A stretch of 63,874 nt of DNA, filler included, from Lenisia limosa (Eukaryota; Protista; Breviatea), in NCBI GenBank assembly GCA_001655205.1. It is 7 parts of 7 records of this genome, joined end to end, with 100 filler letters (N's around TTAATTAATTAA, not from the genome) between each part and the next. Parts side by side here need not be neighbours in the genome. Positions count along the whole stretch, not along the records: positions 1 to 21,269 come from LPNZ01010013.1; 6 more parts are not named here. One strand, written 5' to 3'. A program made the translations under genes and the position numbers. Under the pieces are notes generated by a model. It made no database searches. It saw only the letters and a list, made by a program, of their open reading frames with translations, and had not been told where the DNA came from. Positions 4,501 to 21,269 of this stretch are shown piece after piece (position 1 is the stretch's first letter; each line of letters begins with the position of its first letter).

Positions 4501-5895
4501 AAAGTTAAAATAAGTCAGGTAAAGCTGGTTGCTCACAGAGACAGGGTCGATAGTCGTGAAGATTGTACCTCCGGGACTAAACTGTCAGAAAAAAAAAAAA
4601 TAGTACTAGCGGAAGTTACAAACCCAAACTAGAGGCTAATTAACTCAGCCTCAAGGTCAAAGCTTCTTCTCACCCCCAGTGTTGTTTCCTACAATTACAG
4701 CAATCACTCTCGATGCGCTCCACTGATATGCACAACCACAACCATAATATATATACTATATATATATAGTATATGATATATCATATATGATATATAAGTA
4801 CCTCTTTATATGATCCTTATTTTTACAATCTCCATCCAAACAACCAGCAACCTTCGTCGTCAAGAGATGCCAGGATACTTTGTCGCAATGCAGTCTAAAG
4901 GGGTAACATACTGCAGCTACCTCAGTTGATGATGCTACAGAAACAAGAAGAAAAATGTCTATTAATATAATAAGGCGTGTAACACTCCATCTATTCACAT
5001 CAACAAGCCATCTTAATATCAGGAAAGCATCCTCACGTAATATGTTAACATTTCGTTCTTTGATCAACATAGTCATTCCAAGCTGCCCTTTGCCTGCTCA
5101 CCTCCACTCTAGCTTGGTTGAGGGGCTGCGGCTCCCCAAACAGGTTCATGCGGGTTGGTCTGGTGTGGTAATAAAATGGGGGGGTGGGTATGAAACGAAT
5201 GAAAAAACCCTCCACAAAAATGCATTTAAAAATCGGTTAATGTTGGAGAGAAAGAATTGTACTTTGTGACAGTAATTAAGCCTTGGTATTACGTATTGAA
5301 TTCCATATTAATCTTGAACAAAGAGATGGACACAGTCCAGGACGTGATGNNNNNNNNNNNNNNNNNNNNNNNNNNNNNNNNNNNNNNNNNNNNNNNNNNN
5401 NNNNNNNNNNNNNNNNNNNNNNNNNNNNNNNNNNNNNNNNNNNNNNNNNNNNNNNNNNNNNNNNNNNNACTCTTCTTCTTCTGTTGTTGATCCGTCGACT
5501 TCTGGGGGAGGGGGAATAGTTTCAGTTGTTTTGGCAGGCGTTGGGAGTGTTTCAAATGATTTTGTAAAGTAGAGGGAGGTGGTAGCTTGGGGAGGAGGCT
5601 TGGGGACATAAGAAGAGGTGAGATTCTGCCGCTGAGACGCTCTCAGAGCCGACGCTCGTAAGTAATAGTTTTCATCTTCATCTTCAGTGCTTCCATCATT
5701 GCCGTCAGGATCGTTTTCTTCAAGAGATGCTTTCACTAAATCTTTACCAACCGCTTCCATAGAAAACGCAGACTTATAGTTGACTTCCGCATATCCTAAA
5801 CATGGTGAGAATGGTGCATGGAAATATAGCTTCTTCATACGTCCAGAAAAGTGAACATCAGGTTCTGTAGGGCTCTCTGTCGGAACACTGGCCAT
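1550..5895 (-). CDS. GLE1: mRNA export factor GLE1-like (multi-exon)
   Basis: Exons give RQSIKKAIHVPISQISASQAQII, IIVANKFVDQG, SSFPIACVMIMLVKEFPELHDLYMALLFRHCPYLAPKFP and ESQFWERMRGYASLYAAY, matching the GLE1 C-terminal domain. A coiled-coil exon (MQKRYDEEAKRLQQLKEAELKR) lies upstream. The start at ORF 5895 is inferred. Confidence 0.85.
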
Positions 5896-6271: not shown

Positions 6272-9200
6272 AGCGCTAGCCCCCGTGACACGATTTTCTG
6301 CCTTGCAAACAGTTCGGCACTTACGGACCATTATGACAAGTAAGGGGGGGGGGGGGGGNNNNNNNNNNNNNNNNNNNNNNNNNNNNNNNNNNNNNNNNNN
6401 NNNNNNNNNNNNNNNNNNNNNNNNNNNNNNNNNNNNNNNNNNNNNNNNNNTGATCTGATTATTTAGAAAATCCCTTTGATGAGACATCTCTCAGAACCCT
6501 TGAGGTACACTCAGATTTGATTTGGATGAAACAAAAGCCAAAAATATTCCATTGGCTGGCATCATTTCAATAATACTTAGATGCGTTCCTCATGGTATCT
6601 AGGTTAATGGTAGCGAGTACTCTTATTACGACATTAGAGCGCAATGCTCTCACCTTGGTAGGAGATTTGATGTTGCAATGGGGACTGCCTTTTCACTGAT
6701 TTGCAAACAAATTATTAACGAAAGACCGGGTTAACTTCTTATAGACAAACTACCATACTCGATCCGCGTATTACTCGAGGCAGCCATCAGAAAATGTGAC
6801 AAGTCCGAGGGTATAGTATACATCATAGAATAGGTCAACCAACCACAGCAGTTTCCCCAATATCCCTTCAATATCAACCATTCTACATGACAATTCAGCT
6901 TCTCGGTTACTGAAGCGGACGTTGCCACTGTGAAAAACTGGGAACAAACTTCAAAGGTAAGTAACTACACATACTGCGCGCAATACCAAGTTTTTCTAAA
7001 TTTCAGGAAGGGAAGGAAATTGCCTTTTCCCCCTCGAGGGTTATTCTTCAAGATTTCACGTAAGCGTAGCCTATTCCCTTTGACTTTTATTAATCAATAA
7101 AACATAATGCCATTCCTTGACTTTCAACCTGGATACTGGACTTCCCATACTGATAGTGTAGAGGAGTGCCAGCAGTGGTGGACTTAGCGGCCATGCGAGA
7201 TGCCCATAAACGACTGGGTAGGCATATAATAACAAAAGAAATCATCATGCTTCGTCTTGGAGGTAAAACCTGCAACATCAGCAGTAACTCTCATAGGAGG
7301 AGACCCATCCAAAATCACCCCCCAAACCCAAGTGGATTTGGTCATAGATCACAGTGTTCAGGTTGACGTTGCAGGAGTGTATNNNNNNNNNNNNNNNNNN
7401 NNNNNNNNNNNNNNNNNNNNNNNNNNNNNNNNNNNNNNNNNNNNNNNNNNNNNNNNNNNNNNNNNNNNNNNNNNNNACGTCCAGTCGTGTCCTTTATTTC
7501 TGACCTTTATAGTCCCACTGCTGTGGCTGACAATATGAAAAAGGAGTTTGAGAGGAACCACGAGAGATTCGCATTCCTGAAGTGGGGGAGCTCAGCCTTC
7601 GACAATCTCCGCATTATTCCGCCGGGGGGTGGCATTGTGCACCAGGTATGATAGTTGGCGTGCGATACTGCTATGTACTTTGTTATATACACTTTATTGG
7701 GGCTTTGAACACGAGTAACTGCGTTAGTTGTGTGATGCGTTGTTGCTCCCTGTCCCACCTAAACAGTTCTCATGATGAATTTATCAGCTTTACAATTCCA
7801 GGTCAATTTAGAGTACCTTGCCCACGTGGTCATGAAAGGCAAAGACAACCTGGTATATCCTGATAGCCTTGTGGGCACCGACTCGCATACGACAATGATC
7901 AACGGTCTTGGCGTCACGGGATGGGGTGGGAGGGCTTCAGGTTCAGGTTCAATAGGATCCGCCCGGTAATGGTTAACTTACATTGTGTTAAAATTTTATG
8001 TGATATTCAATCCACGGCTTGGGTTGAGATTTTTCGAAATTTTTTAAAACTCAAACAAAATGGACGTTAGACTTTCTACTTTTCGCCTTGTCTTATTCCT
8101 TCAGGTGTAGGAGGTATCGAAGCCGAAGCGGTCATGCTTGGCCAACCGATCAGACTCACTTTACCAGAGGTTGGTCAAAACAACTTCTTTAGAATGAGCA
8201 ACTGATAACATTGATAATAGGGATCAAATCATAGAATATATAATGCACAAATAATATCCGTTCCAGAGTATCAAATCTGACATATCAGGTTGTGGGCTTC
8301 AACTTACACGGTACCCTTCCGCCAACTTCAACCGCCACTGATCTGGTGCTGACTGTCGTCCAGGTGGGGTGTTTGGTTCCCAATTTCTCATACTATATCG
8401 AGGAGTTATCGAACTCACTTTGGACAAATCCACCTCCATCCTTCACAGGGACAGTGCGTTAATGTTTTTAAAGTGACTGTTCTTCAGCTGCTGCGCCAAA
8501 CCGGAGTGGTCGGCAAGTTTATTGAGTTCTACGGCCCGGGCTTATCTGGACTGAGCATTGCCGATCGCGCCACTATCGCGTAAGCTCCAATATGTTTATT
8601 TGCTTGTTGGTAAACATAAAGATCTACAGTAGATACTTAATCATGTCACCAATTTAGCAACATGTGCCCTGAATACGGTGCCACCATGGGCTTCTTTCCT
8701 CCTGATGAGGAGTCCCTGAATTATCTCCGGTGGCTGGGGCTGTGACTACATCACTGGGGGTTGAGACATTTCTTGCCATGTCTATGATTTGGTTTGATCA
8801 AAGGCGAAAATATTATGTATGTTGATCACATCCACTTAACGGAGGCCTATTGACTTGTGACCTGTGTCATCCCTTAGAACCACTGATAGAGGAGACCAAG
8901 CAACGTTGTGTGAGAAGTATCTCAAGGCTCAGGTACGAATACAATTGAGAATAACTGTAACAATATACTATTTAAGCAGGAGTCCAATTAAATTGCGAAA
9001 ACAATGTTTTTTTGGAATTTCGCCGTGGAATATTGCAAGAATATGCACTTTTCTGGGTCAACTCCAAGTGATTGGAAGATATAATATTTTTTCGTTTTCT
9101 AGGTATTAACTTTTCCTGAAATATTGGTCAAATCGTAAAGTTTCTAGTCTAAAATCACCCATAGAAAGTTTCTGGTCTATAATCACCCATAGAAAGTACT

Positions 9201-12200
9201 AAATTCTATTAATTTAGATAATGATTTATAAAGTGATGTAAAACAGAGACATTACTGTGCCCTCAGGAATTCAGCTAAAAATCTCACGGAAACGATTAAA
9301 CTCAACATTATACAATTGTCCACCCCAGGCCCCAAATCGTATTAACTGGGTTACAAACATTTAATGGGACTCCCGCTTTAACCAATTCCTTCATCATTCA
9401 CAGTCTCTAATTCCTTACCCCACAGTCTCTCATGATGTCTGAAGCAGCCGCGATCCCCTCATATAGCCAAACAGTAGAGCTTGACTTGAGCACAGTGGTT
9501 CCCTCCTTATCGGGACCAAAAAGGCCACAGGTAGATATGGGCTGTCTCTTGTAGAACATAATTTCGTTGAAGCGGTTAGGTTAGTGACGTATTTCGGGAC
9601 TCAATAGAGCTTTAGTCACAAAAAGCCTGTAAACTCTCTTGATTTTATGTGACCATGGTATCTCGCAACCCACTAACCTGCTAGGACCGCGTTCCAATGA
9701 CGGAAATGAAAACAACTTTCGCCAAGTCGTTGCGTGAACCAGTCTCTCTGCAGTCCTTCGGCGTGGCAGACGTCAACAAAAGTCCGCATGTGATGTTAGT
9801 CATTTTTGACTTTGTTATTCTGAATGACTTCATAGTTGTCTATTCTTCAAAGCATGTATTGCATGACAATTGTCCGTCATTCCATCCTTACCATTTGTTC
9901 AGAAGCCGAGGTGGTTGTGAAAGACACAACAAGCGTGATCCATCATGGGTCCGTGGTTCTCGCCGCCATCACGTCCTGCACCAACACCAGCAATCCGTCA
10001 GTGATGCTTGGTGCCGGCATGCTGGCCGAAAGAGCCGTCAAGCGAGGCCTCTCGGTCAAGGTGGGGTACCATGTTAGCTATCCAAGGCCTTCTCTCCCTA
10101 ACCAGTATTACTCAATATCACAGACCAGTACGCCCAATACTCATATTCCACAGCTGTTCACAATATCTGTCTATATTCTAGTGTATTATATTATGGCATG
10201 GTGTGGTGTGGACAACTTCAACAGATACCCCTCCCTTTATCCCATCCATACTCGTGACCCTCTAGCCATGGGTCAAAACGTCCCTTTCGCCAGGGTCGGG
10301 TGTTGTAGAGTTGTACCTCAGGAACAGTGGCTATCTTAAGTCCCTTGAAAAACTGGTACGAATTGTTGCCTTCCCGTATTGCATCAACATTAGAATTTCC
10401 TTGTGTCATTCCTTATAGGGCTTCAACGTTGTCGGCTTCGGCTGCATGACTTGTATCGGCAACTCTGGGCCTTTGGACAACAACATTGTGGATGCAATCA
10501 CTGACAAGTGGGGTGTTTAGACGCTAAGCCCCAAACTGACCATTCAGTGACCTGGTTGTTGCTGGCGTTTTGAGCGGCAATAGGAACTTTGAAGGCAGAA
10601 TTCACCCCCACATTCAAGTAGGTTATTGAGACGTTGGAGTATTTCTTACACCTTAGGCCAACTACCTCGCAAGTCCCATTCTGGTTGGTAAATAGGAACA
10701 ATGACAGTTTGTACACACACGGGTTGTAATTTTATTTTCCCAAGCGACGTTCTTTATTACCACTATCCAAACATGGTGCTATTGAAGAAGTTCACTAACC
10801 GCCAGGTCGTAGCATACGCGCTGGCCGGTCGCGTTGATATCGACTTCGACGCTGAACCTCTGGGTATGGAACCACATGTCTAACCGGAATCTTCCTGGAC
10901 ATTCCTAATTTATTCATATCATATCTTATGGCGATCTCAGCCTCCTCACAAATCAGGTGTTGACAAATATGGGGAGAACGTGTATCTTCGAGACATCTTT
11001 CCGGACAGTGACGCCATCAGTGACGGTACGCTGGTGCATCAAAGGAGAAACCTAAGTGTAAATACTAATGGCTGAATAATATAGTATGGGCGCGTGCCCA
11101 TACTATTATTTGGGTACATCGTGTTAGTCATAATATTAATGAGTTTCGTCATCGTTTCTTCAGCTCAGACCAGTTTTCTTGACACATTCAGTGGTGAATA
11201 GTTATGTCACTGCCGACCTCTTTAAGGAGGGCTATTTGCACGTAACAGAAGGGGACAGTTCATGGCAAAACATCGATGTAGGCCCCCTAATAGGAAATCA
11301 TATGACATACTATGGGATCGGCCGGATGCAGCCATGCTTTATTTCCTATTCTGCCAAGCAAATATTTTATTATATACTATTACTTAGAATAGTATTATAT
11401 CATACTAACGCCTTTTTGAAAGATGCCTCTTTTGGCTCACTTTCAGGTCGAGAAATCTGTGACATACCCTTGGTCAGACAGCACATACATTCACAACCCC
11501 CCGTTCTTCAAGACAATGCAGAAGACACCCGAACCGATCAAACCGTTCAATGTCGGTCATTTGCTGAGCTGGGTGAAATGAATAGATTGACATGCTTCAG
11601 GCCATATCTATGACCTTATGTTCTCTTACTATCAAGGAGTTACCTTGCCTTCTGATGCTTGGAGACTCCATCACTACTGACCACATATCTCCTGCCGGCT
11701 CCATATGTGGGTGTTGGCGTTTGATCCAAATCTTTAATAACATGGTACCGCTATTCCGATAAGGTTATAGTGAAGCCCCGATGACCCTTCAGCTTACCGC
11801 TCTCCTGCAGCGCGCTACTTAGAGGACCACGGCATTGATAGAAGGGACTTCAATACCTATGGCTCACGAAGGGGCAATGACGAAGTTGGAGGGGAGCAGA
11901 TTAGTTATATGTTTATCATTCTGTCCCCGTTGACCATGCAGGTAATGGTTCGAGGCACATTTGCAAACGTTCGACTGGTCAACAAACTAGCCTCCAAAAC
12001 CGGCCCATTCACCTACAACCATCTCACTGGGGAAGAGGTGGGCGTCACCTTGAGACTGGGTATTCGAGTAGTTTTCTTCCTCGACAAACAAGACCCCTTA
12101 CCTCGCTAGGACTTCATATACAACGTGGCAATGGACTACAAGGAAGGCTCAGTTATCGTTGCTGGTAAGCCCCTTCAAGACTATGGTCATTTCAGATCCC

Positions 12201-13109
12201 TTTTTATGCATTCTCTAAATGGAGTTGAGGTATTGCTTTAGTGTTCTATTATCGCTTTACACCTCACGAGAATTAACAAATTGACTGGCCTGGGCTTTGT
12301 TTGTTGTTATCAACCCTCGTGTGTTGTCAGCAGCCAACAGAGTTGATTTTGGGCTTTTTGTTTGTTTCATAAATTTTTCCAGTCCCATATAAGGACTAAC
12401 ACCACTCCCCTCACCAGGCAAGGACTACGGAAGTGGGTCGTCACGTGACTGGGCGGCCAAGGGCCCGGCTCTGCAGGGGGTTAGGGCTATTATCGCCGAG
12501 AGCTTCGAGAGAATCCACAGATCGTGGGCTCGATTCCTGGATTGGCGTATTAGATTTACACAGGAGTATCAGTTTTGTAGCAATAAATGAGGGCCAATTC
12601 GTCTAAAATCCAACCAGTATCTCCTTTTCCATTTGATATCACATCGTTGATAATTCTGTCGGACAGCAATCACCCTCGTAGCAACTTGGCAGGCATGGGT
12701 ATTTTGCCCCTTCAGTTCAGCGAAGGAGACTCAGCTGACAGCCTAGGTCTCACCGGCAAGGTATGGCACTGTCTTCCTCGTACTCTATGTGGCTTTTATT
12801 GTTAAGGAGCGATTCACCATTCAACTCCCTGACGAGATTGAGCCAAAAATGCCTGTCGTAATCAAAGTAAGTTGCTGTGTCTCAGTTACATTTTTTTAAA
12901 AAAAAATTCTTAGCCTTTCTAGTCCTTCTAGCCATATGACCTATCTGATACAATAACGCTTCAGACTTCTTCTGGAAAGTCCCTGAGCTGCATTTTACGT
13001 TTCGACACTCTGGCGGAAGTCGAGTATTTCAGAAACCAGGTTTGTGTCTTTCACTTCAATCCTTACCTTCCAGGGAATCCTGAACTATGTCATCCGCTCA
13101 ATGCTCTGA
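6272..13109 (+). CDS. ACO1: Aconitate hydratase, AcnA/IRP1 type, many introns
   Basis: Exons give [71 protein letters not shown] (4Fe-4S Cys), [16 protein letters not shown] and [11 protein letters not shown] (stop 13107-13109). The 5' end is not fully resolved. Confidence 0.97.
12284..12381 (+). repeat. Dispersed intronic repeat family R1 (representative copy)
   Basis: ACTGGCCTGGGCTTTGTTTG...TCAACCCTCGTGTGTTG...CAACAGAGTTGATTTTGGGC...GTTTCATAAATTTTCCA. Related copies at 16056-16158(-), 20320-20346(-), 21811-21866, 24023-24116, 24268-24390, 27769-27840, 28141-28268, 28389-28454(-), 28970-29010, 58830-58950(-) and 63597-63650(-). Confidence 0.85.
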
Positions 13110-13215: not shown

Positions 13216-16200
13216 TTACCACTTGTCACTCCACTCCTCTTTTTGTCCAGACTGGCCAAACTCCGATTCGTCCGCTTCTTCTTTTTCAGCCTGGGAGGGG
13301 GGCAAAATGATGGCTAAATGAAGAAAACTTCAATTAGGGGGTTATGATAAGAGAATGCACCAGCTTCGATGAGCGAAAGAGGTGGATGAAAGCAACAATC
13401 CATGGAAACTACGCACCTCCTGTAATTTGCCGCTTCTGATAGCCATTGCCTTCTCAATTTGAGAGCCCAATGAGCCCTCCTTATACTGCTGAATCCCTGG
13501 CTTGGCCTTGGGCAGAGCAGAAATCTGGATATGTTAAACCAACTAACAATATTCCGCCCTTCGTTTCAATAGTGTTTGTACCTTCTTGAGGGAGTTTCTA
13601 ATGTTTTGAATGTCAAGCGCAGCTTGCTGGAGCTTGGATTTCTGTTCGATCTTCGGCATCTCAATTTGCTCTGAAAGAGATGAAAATAGCGTCATTGAGC
13701 AGGGTGATGTATCTCAAAAAAACTGGAATGGTAGGGATGGCCCTCAATGGGTTCAAAAATGGTGCTACTTGTAACAGGGAAAGTAAATGTCCGGCATTAT
13801 CCCAAGACCTCACCAGAAGAGGCTTTTAGTGCAACATCAGCCAAGGACTTGAAGGTGATCTTAGGGATCTTGACTACAGGTGGAGAGGGTGAGGAGAGCG
13901 GACAAAAAAAATGGGGAATAGATGACGGGAATATTTTGGGAATGGGGATACTAAAAAAAGGAAGAAAATTCAACATCTAACAAAAGACCCCGAGAAGCAG
14001 GCCCACTTTTTGATGCTGATGTTGTGACAAGCTTCGGTTGGATGGACAGAGCTGGATAATCAGAGGGGCTGAGTACAAAATGAATATTTCATGTGGGGAG
14101 TAATTCGAGTTAACTTTTGGATACTCAAAAAGTTAACAACTCATATAAAATAACAGTATGTACTGATTAACTAGATCCTTGAAGAAAGATGTTTCGAGTC
14201 TACATGGTTATAAATAATCAAATTTCAAGATAAAGGATTAAAACTGACTGTCAAAGAACTTATAATGACTATTCCGACCAATGTAAAACTATGTAAAGAA
14301 ATGTGAGCTCATCAGGTATCATACAATCGAACCACGTAACCCTTAATTTTTTAAAAATGTGAAAAACTGCAATTCTGTTCCAAACAAAATATAAAAGCGG
14401 CAATACCAATCCATATCTCAGTCAATATTTAGAACCACAAGTGTGCTTTCTAAGAGCATCAAAAAAGGNNNNNNNNNNNNNNNNNNNNNNNNNNNNNNNN
14501 NNNNNNNNNNNNNNNNNNNNNNNNNNNNNNNNNNNNNNNNNNNNNNNNNNNNNNNNNNNNNNNNNNNNNNNNNNNNNNNNNNNNNNNNNNNNNNNNNNNN
14601 NNNNNNNNNNNNNNNNNNNNNNNNNNNNNNNNNNNNNNNNNNGGTGGTGATTGGCGTGGCCGCGACCGGGGCAATCTGGGCGACAGTGGGTAGGAGGGAC
14701 ACCATCGGTACCGAAAGTTCAGGTTGCACCTGAGGGATGAGAATTCTGGCATCGATAGGGGATTCAACCCTCCAGGATGAATGACACTGCAATCAGCAAA
14801 CAGCCCCCCCCCCCCNNNNNNNNNNNNNNNNNNNNNNNNNNNNNNNNNNNNNNNNNNNNNNNNNNNNNNNNNNNNNNNNNNNNNNNNNNNNNNNNNNNNN
14901 NNNNNNNNNNNNNNNNNNNNNNNNNNNNNGGGAGTTGGGTGGGTTGAGCAGCCACGGCCGCGGACATGAGAACGGTACTGTTGGCAGTGGCTACGGTGGC
15001 GGCGAGAGCGGCAGATGATGCACGCACGCAGACGGCTCGGTTACTGAACTGAACTGTTCCGTCGGCTGTGGAGATGTAAATGCCGGTTCCAGGTTAGTTT
15101 GGGGTAGTTGGATACTGTTTTTATTATTGTGAAAAGTAACAATTTATCTCAGAGTGATGATAACTAGTTCAAGCCGCACGTACCAGCGATAACTGGAGTC
15201 AACTTGGTGCCCTCTATTGCCTTTGAGGCTGCTGTAACAGCCAGGGTTGTCAACGCGGTCATCTGAGGGGTCAAAGAGGACTGGTGGAGTCACAATGGTT
15301 AGTTTGTTCAAAAACTAACCTTTTCATCTTCATCTTGCTCCACAACAATAGGGGCAGCAATAGGAGCTGTTCGAGTAAGTCTACAGAAGGGACTGAGGAA
15401 TGCCCATTGGAACTCAAATCAACAACTTGTGCAGAAAAATAAGACAAATGTGCGAGTGGATATTGATACAGTACATATACATACAGTGTATACTCAACAA
15501 AGGATTGCGCATACATGACCTTTTAATCAATAGTAACGTACCGGGAGGAGGAGGCAAGTCTTCACCTGTCTGGGCATTGATTGCTTTGACAGCAACAGGC
15601 TCAGCAAACACCACATCACCTGAGGAATGAGGCGGAAATTAATCTGAAAATAATGATAATAGAACTGTTCAACACAAGATGACAAACTCACCACTGGGCA
15701 GTTTGTAGGCCTGAGACGCGGCGTTAAGTACCGACGGAACAATCGGAAGCTCCGAGCCATCTGAAGCCACCGCCTTGGTTGCCGTGGCCGTGGCAAGGGT
15801 GTACTCTCCCTCCGAGGTCATTACCACTTCTAAACTGATAAAACTAGTCACATTGGTAAATCGCTTGGTAAGAAGGATCTCTTCAGTGGCCAGGCATATT
15901 CCATTCCATCAGATAAGCCACCAACTAGCAGGAGGGGCGACATAGACGCTTTGGACCGGCATCGGCGGCGGGAGGGCGACAAAGGACCCATCTGGTGCGG
16001 TGACCTTCATCGGAACAGCAGTGGCACTCAGCAGATCTCCGTCGGCTCCTGTGGAGGGGGGGGGGTAAAATTGGAAAATTTATGAAACAAAAAAAAGCTC
16101 AAAATCAACTCTGTTGGCTGACAACACACAACAAAACAAACAAAGCCCAGAGCAGTCGGGGGAGGGTATGTGGGGTAATAGATTGTCCTTGTATAAAGTG

Positions 16201-19200
16201 GTGTTACCTGCTAATTTGTACTTGACATCTTAATCGCAGAAGACGTAATAATGTTCCCAATACATATTAATTATTGTCGCGAAAGTGCAGGGATCACCAA
16301 AACCACCTATTGTGCGACCCCCTCCCCACCTCTGAAGACCTGTTGCGGTGGCAGGGGGCACACCGCTTGACCCTGAGCTGTGGTCACCGCTGTGGCCGCG
16401 ACCGGGGGTGCGAACTCCAAAGACGCATCGGCAGTCTGAGCTCTCACTGGCACGGCCTCCGCAAAGGTTAGTGACCCGTCACTCAGACGCACCGGCACGG
16501 CGTTCTCGGGCAGCGAGTCCGAGCATTCGTTGCAGGCCACTGCAGGCAGTGCTATTTCAACGTCGTCAACGGTTACGGCCTTCATTGGGATTGCAGACGC
16601 AAATCCGACCTGAGAAACTCAGTAAGTCGTGTTCTGAGTGCAGGAGTGGTCAACACTAGCATTTATGTCTCCCAAGATTGAACAATACATTCACCCACTA
16701 ACCTCTCCCTCAGAATCTCTGAAAACGGACATGGGTTTGGGGGCTAAAAGAGGAGCAGAAATGCCAGACACAGTTGGCATACCTGAAGGTGTTAGAAAAA
16801 GGCACGAATGCAGACCTCATAACTTTTTTCTACTCGAAAAAAAAGCAAAAAAAAAAGACAGGAAAATAGATGATAGATTGTATGGCGTGTTGGTCAAGCA
16901 TGCTTTTTGGGGACTGAGAGAAACATAGTGTTAATGAACAACCAGTATACCCCCCTCACCAATGGGAACAGTCGGAAGGTCCAGTTCTTCGCCGGACCGC
17001 AGCTTTGCCTTGCACTCCACTGCGGTGGCGTAGGTCACTTTGCCGTCCACAGTACGCACCGGGACCGGAAGCTCCTGCGGCGTGCTTGCGGCCGCGGCCA
17101 CAGCCAAGACCTCCATGGGGACCTCGGGAAGCTCGTCGCCGGCACTTCCGACGGCAATGAGGGGGATGGCCTCGGCGACCGTGATGTCGCCGCTTTCGGT
17201 CTTGTAGAAGCCGGGCTCAGCTTTGACAACAGCTGGTATCGCGCCGCATGATGTAGCTAATTTAACAGGGGCGGCTTGGACAATGGGGGGCAAGGCGGTG
17301 CCTTGTTCGTCGACAGCGCTACACGGCACTGCGGTGGCGTACTTGGTGGTTCCGTCGGCTGTTTGGACGGCGACTGGCTGCTGAGAAGCGAAAGACGGCG
17401 GCGGGGGGAGGAGGTCATGCCCACTAGCGTCAACGGCCTTGAGCGGCACGGGAACAGCGTTGAATATGTCTCCGTCGGAACCTCGGAAGAACTGAGCTGC
17501 CGGCGCGGGTTCAACTGCTGACATTACACCCAAAGCCGTTGGCACAACGGGGGCGGCCGAAGCGGTAACGGGCTCTAGAGCCGCATCTGTGCCGTCTTTC
17601 AATACGGCCTTGCAGGGGACAGCCTCGGCAGCATAGGTAATGGTACCGTCGGCAAGGGCAATGGGAATGTTGTGCATGCCGGGGGCGGCCACTGGAGGGG
17701 GTGGCAAGACTGAGCCATCCATGGTCGTTGCTTTAACAGGAACAGAGGAGGCGATGAAAACAGAGTTATCAACATTTCGGAAGGCCATGACGGGGGCCAC
17801 AACCTCCGGACAGGCCAAGATGCCCTGGGAAGATGGAATGAGGACAGGAGCAGGCGGCATAGGGACCTCAAGGCCCGATTCGGTAGTTGCCATAACGGGA
17901 ATGGGGGTGGCGTAGACGATTGAACCGTCGAGAGCCCGGACCGGAGCGGCGAGAGATTGGACTGTGTCGGCCGCAGCAACCTATGAGGTTAGAAGAAGAA
18001 AGACTTGGGAANNNNNNNNNNNNNNNNNNNNNNNNNNNNNNNNNNNNNNNNNNNNNNNNNNNNNNNNNNNNNNNNNNNNNNNNNNNNNNNNNNNNNNNNN
18101 NNNNNNNNNNNNNNNNNNNNNNNNNNNNNNNNNNNNNNNNNNNNNNNNNNNNNNNNNNNNNNNNNNNNNNNNNNNNNNNNNNNNNNNNNNNGAGAAATGT
18201 GCGGAAAGCCTAAGGTGACATCCACATTATCACAGAGTACAGTATATTGAGAGTCCTTACAAAAAACAAACTGCTACATACCTTGGGAGGGGGAGGAAGA
18301 GTCTCACCGGACACGGCAATAACCTTGGTGGCAATCGGAGTGACATAACTGATCGTTCCGTCGGCAAGCTCCATGGGAACAGCCACATCAGCCGCACCCG
18401 CACAGAGGCCTGCAGCGACTGAAGAAGGCGGTGCGGGCAGTGGCGATCCGTTGACAGCCTCGATGCTGTGCGGGACAGCCTCGGCAAAGACGACCTTATC
18501 ATCAAGAGTCACAACAGCCACAGTTCCTTTAGGTGCAGGAGCCGTTGGCATGTCGATGCTGCGCGCCTGGGCCACGCTCTCAGTCGCCACGGTGGCGTAG
18601 AAGATAGCGCCGTCGTCGGCCTTGAAAGGGCGGAGAGAAGCAGCAACTGCGGCGGCGGAGACCACACCAACAGTGTCAACAATGTCGTCGAAGTTCGGCA
18701 GCGGCGGCAGTTCGGACTCATCCAGGGCCACGGGGCGCACGTCGACGGGCTTGGCATACACAACTTCGCCATGGTTGTTCCGAGCCGGAACCAGTTCGGA
18801 TTGGCTTCCGACTGTAGCTTCTGAGGCTTCCAATACGGCCGGCGGCGGGGGTAACGCGCTGCCATCGGCGGCAACAAGAACCGTCGGAACGGCCTGGGTG
18901 AACATGACGTCACCATTTTCCATTCTGAAGGGCCGGGCCGCGGCAAGAGGGGCAGCGGAAGTGACTTGGTCCGGTTCGGGCAACACGGTTCCGTCCAAGG
19001 CTGTGAACTTCAGCGGCACGGCTTCGGCGTAACTAATTTCACCGGTCTCTGCTCTGACCGGCTCGAAATTGGCGTTGTCTTCGATCATTCTTGACACGAC
19101 GACGGGTGGCGGCGGCGGAAGAACTGAGCCGTCTGCAGCCTCGCCCTTGACAGCCACTGCAGCGCCAAAGAGAACGCTTCCGTCGGCCATCTTGTAGGGC

Positions 19201-21269
19201 TTGAAGTCGGCAAGTCGTCTTGACGGCATGCTTGAGTCCACAGCAGCAACCGTGATGGCTGAAGGGGCCTCAGGCAGAACAGTGTCGTCCAATGCCACAA
19301 AGGTCACGCCAACAGCCTCGGCATACTGCAGCGCACCCTCGTTGTCCTGGACCACCTCATACGACAGGCCATTCTGTGTGCCCTCGAGAACAGCAGCGGG
19401 CGGCGGCGGGAGACTGATGCCATGAGTTGTCACGGCCTTAGCGGCTACAGCTGACGCGTAGATCACTGATCCGTCCTCGAGCTTGAAAGGCTTCATGGTG
19501 TTCAGTCTGTCGGCTCCTGACACGCCCGCAACCGCAGCAACAGCAGCCACTGCGGGAGGTGGCGGTAACGCTGTACCGTCGGAAGCTACATACTCCACGT
19601 GGGCGGGGGCGGCGAATGCCACGTCACCATCGGTAGTTCGAACCGGAACAGCCTGGACTTCCGATAAGGCGCTTCCGACAGCCGGCGGCGGCGGCAGAAC
19701 GGTACCATCAGCCGCAGCAACCTGGATGGGTACAGCGGTGGCGTAGATGACGTCACCATTGGTGGTTTGGAAGGGTCTGAGAGTGGAGAGAACGGCCGGG
19801 GCGGCAGTAGCGCCAGTAGCTTGCGACACTTCAGCCAGGGTCGGGAGGTCAGGAAGAGTCTGGCGCGCTGAAAACTCGACAGCAATGGCCTCGGCATAGG
19901 CAATGTCTCCATTTTGCTTCGTGACAGGCTGGAGCTGGTTCAAGGGGGTGTAGAGCGAGTCGTGGACCGTGGAGGGAGGAGGGGGGAGAATAGCGTCATC
20001 GAGAGGAACAATTGCCTTGGCTGGAAGGGGAACAGCGTACACAACGTCCCCATTGAGGAGCTTGAAGGGCCTGAGGGTGGGGACTGTTACTTCGCTGCAC
20101 ATTTCAGGCATTTCAGGCAACTCAGGAAGAACCGTATCATCAAGAGCTGAGAACACCACTGGTACAGGTTCAGCGTATACGATGGAGTTGTCGGCCTTAC
20201 GAACTGCTGTCAGCTGTTCGGACGGGGTCACTACTGAAGCGGCAACAACTTCTGAGGGGGAGAGGGGGAGGGGGGGTAAAACGGAGGAAATTTCGATGGC
20301 GTAAAGGTACTAACCAGTACAATTGGAAATTTATGAAACAAAAAAGTCAGACGTGATGGAACGGCAAAGCGGAATCCGTTATAACTAGTTTGGCAATAAT
20401 AATAGAAATAACATCATCAAAGCACACAATAAGACAAAAATTAAGAGAAAAGGAGACATAACAGCAAAAAGACTCATCGAAGACGCCAAACAACCCAAAC
20501 AAGCATACCCGGGAGAGCAGGTAGGACGGTGCCGTCAGCGGGTGCAGCCGCATCTACTGTGGCCGCGACGGCGTAAATAACGCGACCGTCTTCAGTTTCA
20601 AATGCCTGGGCGTGTTAGTAGTGTTACTAATGTTGAAAAGTTCCATAAATCTGAGGAGGTGGGTATTAGGGATTTAAAAAAAATATGGAACTGAACAAAA
20701 GATACCGAGAAGAAAAATTGAACATACAAATCAAAAACGACGTACTACTGTCTGATATTTGCAAAACTGGTGACGACACACTGCTTGAGAAAAAAAAAAA
20801 TAGCACTACAGCAGCATACCTTGACATCGCCAAGAGTAGCCTCGGGGTTTGCCTTCTGGATGGGCCCGGGAACGGCAAGGGGCGGCGGCGGGGCGGACTT
20901 GCCGTCATTGGTCACGTGCTTGACTGACACAGCCTCGCAGTACGTGATTGAACCGTCGGCAAGACGCACGGGTTCAAGAGCCTGGTTTTGGCCTTCTAAA
21001 AAGGGGGTAAGGTGGTAATGGTATGGAGTAATGCTAAAATCAAACAGATAAAACGTTCAGGGTGACAGAAGCGTTCAGTCCACAGTCATACCAGCAGAAG
21101 GGGGCGGCGGAAGGTCATCACCGTTGTCTTGGACCATTTTGACCTTCATGGGCTCGCCAAACACCGTTTGGCCATCAACGGTCTTGTAAGCAAGGGGCTG
21201 AGGCGCACCGTCCGGCACCAGTTGCAAAACGTACAGTGGAATCGGCTCAGTGGGGGCTGGGGGGGGGGG
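13216..21269 (-). CDS. Giant uncharacterised repeat protein (~30 repeats, many ending LPPPP) with a putative C-terminal WH2-C-A module; 5' end lost at contig linker
   Basis: Long open exons (about 18283-20252 and 16931-17990) plus many short GT-AG exons encode PFxxxDGxxxYAxAVPxxxxxxDGxxLPPPP units. Terminal exons 13582-13670, 13417-13524 and 13216-13290 are in phase and read ...KLQQAALDIQNIRNSLKK/ISALPKAKPGIQQYKEGSLGSQIEKAMAIRSGKLQE/AEKEEADESEFGQSGQKEEWSDKW*. Continuity across masked segments at 14.5-14.9 kb is inferred. Confidence 0.75.

Follow-up and report, generated by a model that had tools for sequence, protein, structure and literature searches.

The minus strand of contig LPNZ01010013.1 of the breviate Lenisia limosa carries a real, lineage-restricted protein-coding gene, predicted from the genome of this intron-rich anaerobic protist, whose product is built from an unrecognised tandem repeat. 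The window analysed is 63,874 nucleotides long, filler included, and joins seven parts of assembly GCA_001655205.1; its positions 1-21269 are one entire contig, and the assembly as a whole comprises 49.0 Mb in 11,727 contigs. The gene lies at 14930-21269, and the encoded protein is at least about 1500 residues long, in which a super-repeat of about 94 residues occurs at least 14.5 times. A first-pass annotation of this DNA had reported about 30 copies of an unrecognised repeat domain, of two alternating types, A and B, forming a dimer of about 95 residues. We find 29 clear units, with E-values of 1e-11 to 1e-19, and one weak unit at a mean period of 47.2 residues, and the alternation is exceptionless over all 29.

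Reading of the minus strand and location of splice sites gave at least 13 exons and 12 introns, as follows (a slash within letters marks a splice junction).

Exon 1 (as seen), 21092..21269, minus strand: unit 1 (B type); open frame; donor G/GTATGA at 21092/21091.
Exon 2, 20820..20995, minus strand: unit 2 (A type), E 5e-17; AG acceptor and GT donor, frame kept.
Exon 3, 20509..20605, minus strand: unit 3 (B type); AG/GT boundaries, frame kept.
Exon 4, 18282..20251, minus strand: 1970 bases; seven A+B pairs (units 4-17), the 14 units scoring E 5e-9 to 2e-16.
Intron 4, 17981..18281, minus strand: encloses assembly gap 18012-18191; 301 bases at the estimated gap length.
Exon 5, 16960..17980, minus strand: units 18-24; open frame of 340 codons, in which the 7 units score E 2e-11 to 5e-15.
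Exon 6, 16703..16782, minus strand: linker and first strand of unit 25; AG/GT boundaries.
Exon 7, 16330..16609, minus strand: remainder of unit 25, unit 26 and beginning of unit 27.
Exon 8, 15926..16048, minus strand: remainder of unit 27; splicing restores QQVFRGADGD...
Exon 9, 15692..15829, minus strand: unit 28 and beginning of unit 29.
Exon 10, 15542..15619, minus strand: remainder of unit 29, the last clear unit.
Exon 11, 15320..15366, minus strand: putative acidic linker APIAAPIVVEQDEDEK, placed from the frame only.
Exon 12, 15184..15262, minus strand: Ala/Thr-rich stretch.
Exon 13, 14930..15065, minus strand: weak 30th unit ADGTVQFSNRAV..., E 0.059 on the spliced frame; runs into N gap 14816-14929.
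Possible further exon, 14643..14729, minus strand: VQPELSVPMVSLLPTVAQIAPVAATPITT; AG acceptor at 14731-14730; open Ala/Val/Pro-rich frame of uncheckable phase.

All introns are GT-AG, with lengths of 57-301 bases, and the joined frame, which all 12 of them keep, runs for 1467 codons without a stop. Exons and introns differ in their content of guanine plus cytosine (GC), 0.60 versus 0.40. Exon 4, which corresponds to the exon of about 2 kb with about 14 alternating units described in the first-pass annotation, is open over 656 codons in the coding frame only, the other two frames containing 15 and 28 stops. Introns interrupt three of the units, and these are whole only in the spliced frame, which lends independent support to the splice model; at the exon 6/7 junction, for example, ...FRDSEGE is joined to VGFASAIPMK..., giving a complete unit 25 (E 5e-13). 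The weakest splice site in the model is the donor GTTGGT after exon 8, and the acceptor of exon 11 is the sole one that carries the frame into exons 12-13. The spliced model was used for frame checks and unit counts, while database searches and fold predictions were run on single exons or parts of exons.

Intron 4 contains a gap in the assembly. Its donor is CCC AAG/GTATGT (last exon base 18282) and its acceptor CATAG/GTT, with the preceding sequence CCTCATAG/GTT (first exon base 17980), both in phase 0. At 301 bases it is similar in size to the other introns, and its flanks are in frame as a single intron. Unit 17, before the gap, occupies a B slot and unit 18, after it, is of A type; as both this parity and the frame are kept, no odd number of units is missing, while an entire dimer may be hidden, the gap length being an estimate. 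A break in the alternation between units 17 and 18, with an exon concealed in the N gap, was considered and rejected, unit 17 having Met in the aromatic slot together with the LPPPP end of a B unit.

Both sides of the gene are truncated, on the 5' side by the contig end at 21269 and on the 3' side by the N gaps 14816-14929 and 14469-14642; the 3' end is unreadable because the possible further exon runs into the latter gap. The first-pass annotation had placed the array at 15540-21260, which holds for the region of the array, but the gene continues on the minus strand below 15540, at least as far as 14930. Runs of C or G occur at 21259-21269, at 14801-14815, in the region of 14930 and at L026:1-14, at contig ends or beside N gaps, and may be artefacts of sequencing or scaffolding. 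The first 11 bases of exon 1 are such a poly-C run, and the PPPP of the first four codons is for this reason not counted as a motif. Open reading frames of the window (protein records P0001 and P0002) are also recorded from an ENA contig that, at 49,004 bases, is over twice as long as the 21,269-base contig seen here, and another assembly version with that contig may carry the missing 5' end. In the present assembly, the contigs numbered adjacent to this one are unrelated and the other contigs are without units. One of the adjacent-numbered contigs, C10012 (L026:3-365), has a poly-C start followed by an open frame, ...NGNPYYAHELALDMKQSG..., which is unrelated to the repeat gene.

The 14 units of exon 4 served as the seed of a profile, which was iterated on the six-frame translation of 1-21269. 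It detected 29 units, all on the minus strand, at 15534-21197 (E 1e-8 to 1e-17), with none comparable elsewhere in 1-21269, on the other strand or in other frames (best other match E 0.09). On the spliced frame, units start every 37-58 residues and the two-unit period is 84-103 residues. The unit consensus is xxP[FV]+xxDGxVxYAxAVPxKxxAxDGxxLPPPP, so that the profile recovers the motif given in the first-pass annotation, and few columns are kept better than the proline motif. The gene is single copy, 28 units being matched by a profile search of the 49-Mb assembly and all 28 lying on this contig. The spliced protein is rich in Ala (17%), Val (13%) and Pro (12%), has no Trp and 12 Cys, and is strongly acidic (161 Asp+Glu versus 74 Lys+Arg). 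LPPPP occurs 11 times and LP..P 21 times, and there are two N-glycosylation sequons.

The alternation is carried mostly by position 4 of the unit. Odd-numbered (B) units have Phe or Tyr there, and once Met, while even-numbered (A) units have Val, once Ala and once Ile; the chance of such an alternation through 29 units is 1e-8 to 2e-7. It spans the entire array, beyond the 2-kb exon. Within exon 4, pairs of units at even distance share 38% identity versus 32% at odd distance (permutation p 0.00075). Lesser shares of the signal come from position 2 (Arg/Lys/Gln in B versus Val/Glu in A), position 20 (Lys in B), the proline motif and the spacing. Unit ends are mostly LPPPP in B and mostly LPxxP in A, with PPPP in 10/15 B units versus 2/14 A units (Fisher p 0.008), and the spacing is shorter in the B-to-A step, at 44 residues, than in the A-to-B step, at 50 (p 0.002). 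When position 4 is left out of the first 20 columns the alternation is weak (p 0.056), so A and B represent closely similar variants of a single unit.

The array is old and is maintained at the protein level, as the first-pass annotation had supposed from the divergence of the DNA. No long-period tandem array was seen at the DNA level by Tandem Repeats Finder, and base identity between units over the first hairpin is 45%, with a maximum of 65%. Identity between units at third codon positions is 0.34 versus 0.27 expected from composition, and the conserved Gly is encoded by all four codons (GGT, GGA, GGC and GGG). Synonymous sites are thus near saturation, which indicates that the array is old and that the motif has been kept by selection on the protein.

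Searches for relatives covered sequence families, structures and metagenomes. Pfam-A gave no family match for whole exons, 28 single units or nine B+A dimers (E up to 1-10), only isolated chance matches at E >=0.14, in keeping with the earlier statement that no known Pfam repeat fits. PDB sequences gave no match by phmmer or profile search (best E 0.6-1.4), neither ESM Atlas nor a metagenome scan yielded a relative of the large exon, and the 699-residue exon, compared by word index with 5.8 billion proteins, retrieved only itself. An exhaustive profile search of 1.84 billion representative proteins recovered the gene's own open reading frames (P0001, P0002 and P0004), an orphan protein, P0009, and five repeat proteins; like the Pfam and PDB searches, it produced no strong match to a described repeat family. 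The five repeat proteins, P0003 and P0005-P0008, were rejected as spurious, being near-identical repeats whose weak partial matches sum up: P0003 and P0008 resemble bacterial wall proteins, P0006 is bacterial and FG-GAP-like, and P0005 and P0007 resemble mammalian repeat proteins. By sequence, the repeat appears to be a new family of an ordinary general kind, that of tandem-repeat structural proteins, without detectable relatives in these searches.

The sole lead is P0009, a 773-residue orphan from the Logan assembly of a public sequencing run (6078-base contig). It has ten tandem copies of LQAFQDENGNIVYCDxxGNVV with a period of 33-51 residues, separated by acidic Ala/Pro/Glu/Val linkers. Its first hairpin aligns to the unit profile with a whole-library E of 2.8e-4, and hhalign gives a probability of 85% and a score of 23.5, versus a maximum of 14.1 in 100 column shuffles. 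The alignment is ungapped over unit positions 1-16 (14-16 positions), and an 8-residue gap brings the second DG into line over 28-29 columns at the same score. P0009 differs from the Lenisia unit in having no AVPxK segment, no LPPPP and no A/B alternation. It starts MGCTNSK, the N-terminal MGC of which we take to be a possible acylation site. No relatives of P0009 were found in the 5.8-billion-protein search or ESM Atlas, it belongs to no Pfam family, and this genome carries no copy of it. P0009 may be a distant relative, or its hairpin repeat may have arisen by convergence; homology is plausible.

Pairs of units were modelled with AlphaFold2, followed by Foldseek, as the first-pass annotation had proposed. 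The alignments consisted of internal repeats only, ten A+B pairs in one and nine B+A pairs in the other. The A+B model has a predicted local distance difference test (pLDDT) of 64 and a predicted template modelling score (pTM) of 0.24, with hairpins at unit positions 2-5/11-16. The B+A model reaches a mean pLDDT of 73 and a pTM of 0.49, with strands at 2-6, 11-16, 45-49 and 54-59, block means of 78-88 and linkers below 50. Each unit is thus predicted to form one beta-hairpin around a DG turn, from positions 2-6 and 11-16 (pLDDT about 80-88), and the stretch after the proline run is a low-confidence linker. Two DG/NG-turn hairpins per unit had been suggested in the first-pass annotation; the first is borne out by the prediction, but around the second DG the model shows only isolated bridge residues and no second clear hairpin. 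The A+B order of the dimer implied there also changes, the structural dimer being probably B+A, since this order has the better pTM and the B-to-A spacing is the shorter.

No fold relatives of the pair models were found, the best Foldseek E being 0.09 and the best VIA-align Z 2.9 among 48161 chains. With the B+A model, Tudor-like or SH3-like small barrels (PHF19, MTF2, LBR and the KDM4A double Tudor) top both fold searches, at Z 2.0-2.9, far below the 7-8 usual for unrelated models, and at Foldseek E >=0.09. These matches are at most a hint that the two hairpins may pack as a small barrel.

Taken with the sequence, the models suggest an extended, beads-on-a-string protein, restricted to its lineage, that would serve as a structural element or spacer, a reading to which we give about even chances. 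The super-repeat would run from a B unit with its LPPPP end through a short polar linker to an A unit with its LPxxP end and a longer Ala/Val-rich linker. Each unit would fold as a beta-hairpin around its Asp-Gly turn, and within a B+A pair the hairpins probably pack together as a single small beta module. Proline runs would terminate the sheet and stiffen the exit from it, and the Ala/Val-rich linkers would be flexible, so that the whole protein could be an extended string of small folded beads. Its role might then be that of a cortical or cytoskeletal fibre, or of a matrix or coat component, rather than of an enzyme. A bolder version we regard as doubtful: that B+A is a new, autonomously folding small beta module of two DG-turn hairpins with proline stops, and that this gene and P0009 are the first members of an undescribed membrane- or cortex-associated fibre family of little-studied protists, with a candidate role as a fibre component of the feeding-groove cytoskeleton of anaerobic flagellates.

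Several observations weigh against the beads-on-a-string reading. The model of the 673-residue exon product in ESM Atlas has a pLDDT of 0.43 and a pTM of 0.25, and because of this low confidence no rigid superstructure is predicted; an extended fibre, as envisaged in the first-pass annotation, may be formed, but no rigid one emerges from the models. The AlphaFold2 alignments are shallow (9-10 internal repeats), a pTM of 0.49 is borderline, and the contrast between B+A and A+B is not a clean test because the two predictions used different first sequences. Both ends of the protein are missing, and a signal peptide, an anchor or a catalytic end domain could lie there. Nothing ties the protein to a cell structure.

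The low ESM Atlas scores, the A+B pTM of 0.24 and the lack of any fold match at better than the Z and E values given above would suit an intrinsically disordered, low-complexity protein without a folded core, in which the repeat is kept for its composition or for short linear motifs. We consider this unlikely, as hydrophobic residues alternate in the conserved columns around the DG turn, a pattern typical of hairpins and kept despite near-saturated synonymous sites, and the hairpin regions of the B+A model have block means of 78-88. An artefact of assembly, or a frame that is open by chance in repeated, GC-rich DNA, is already disfavoured and extremely improbable: the draft contig is gapped and has poly-G/C beside N gaps and at its end, but 12 canonical introns keep a single open frame with a sharp GC contrast between exons and introns, and the units are too diverged in DNA (<=65% identity over the first hairpin) to come from a recent repeat that was collapsed or mis-assembled.

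The proline motifs themselves offer two further explanations. EVH1 domains are described as binding FPPPP/LPPPP as their canonical motif and the variant LPPPPP with lower affinity (PMC4543927), and the protein could be a multivalent scaffold whose LPPPP and LPxxP motifs recruit partners of the EVH1/WH1, profilin, WW or SH3 type, as ActA, zyxin and lamellipodin cluster Ena/VASP, with the hairpins spacing the motifs. The 11 LPPPP and about 10 LPxxP motifs, the good conservation of the proline motif, the fit of LPPPP to the EVH1 motif (PMC4543927) and an acidic, extended chain like that of ActA-type ligands all point this way. The repeats of EVH1 ligands, however, are short, disordered stretches that lack a conserved hairpin, and a pure motif array would need no 30 conserved hairpin residues per unit. 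No EVH1/WH1 domain (PF00568) was found in the 49-Mb assembly, where one candidate did not score, although an exon-wise search of a draft genome is not proof of absence. The motifs also lack the basic flank of SH3 ligands and, bar one exception, the PPxY/PPLP of WW ligands, and four prolines are short for profilin, which together make such a scaffold distinctly unlikely. Still more improbable in our view is a secreted, extensin-type hydroxyproline-rich glycoprotein, in which the PPPP runs would be hydroxylated and glycosylated to give stiff rods in a cell coat or cyst wall. Evenly spaced PPPP, abundant Ala, Val, Ser and Thr, scarce Cys and a long array would suit it, but extensin-type proteins have Ser-Pro(3-5) or (Ser-Pro)n motifs, which are absent here, the proline runs following DGxx and Leu. 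The N-glycosylation sequons number only two, and the N-terminus, with any signal peptide, lies out of sight beyond the contig end. To our knowledge, extensin-type wall chemistry is not known in this kind of protist.

Choline/cell-wall-binding (PF01473) and YD (PF05593) repeats share an aromatic-x-Asp-x-x-Gly pattern with a hydrophobic strand leading to Tyr, in a strand-turn-strand arrangement repeated many times. The logic of the Lenisia repeat is similar, but neither family was matched at E up to 10 by the 28 units or nine dimers, and the unit is 47 residues long rather than about 20, with a proline stop and a long linker. Articulins, alveolins and epiplasmins are repetitive, Val/Pro-rich, beta-prone, lineage-restricted structural proteins, basic or neutral, with periods of about 12 residues (VPV-type). 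The Lenisia protein is likewise Val/Pro-rich and repetitive and may have the same kind of role, but it is acidic and has a period of 47/94 residues, and no sequence relation was found.

The genome setting was assessed by family searches of the assembly. The [FeFe]-hydrogenase large subunit has matches on seven contigs (C3365, C7467, C2193, C2673, C10004, C5970 and C4901; best E 6e-45), representing several intron-split genes, and the Zn-cluster family has two matches. COX1, chlorophyll a/b-binding protein, AP2, homeodomain and WH1 gave no match in the assembly. This family content indicates a protist that is intron-rich, non-photosynthetic and either anaerobic or microaerophilic.

Two other features of the contig are as follows.

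Aconitase gene, 7250-12600, plus strand: split into numerous short exons and convergent with the repeat gene; matches Pfam Aconitase and Aconitase_C at E 5e-10 to 9e-16.
Open frame, 5470-5895, minus strand: acidic Ser/Thr/Pro-rich product MASVPTESPTEPDVHFSGRMKKLYFHAPF..., no Pfam match; runs into N gap 5350-5468.

The aconitase gene sits in a genome with several [FeFe]-hydrogenases and no COX1 match. Aconitase goes unmentioned in the genome paper of the free-living fornicate Kipferlia bialata (PMC5874029).

If the Lenisia protein is only a lineage-specific spacer, it would be one more orphan among the many in protist genomes. If B+A is a true folded module, both its small beta fold and its repeat family, with a clear period of two units, would be new, and it would offer a clean case of tandem-repeat evolution by duplication of a dimer, conserved past synonymous saturation. 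Few proteins are known for the cytoskeletal fibres of anaerobic, intron-rich flagellates, and this single-copy giant repeat protein is a reasonable candidate for localisation.

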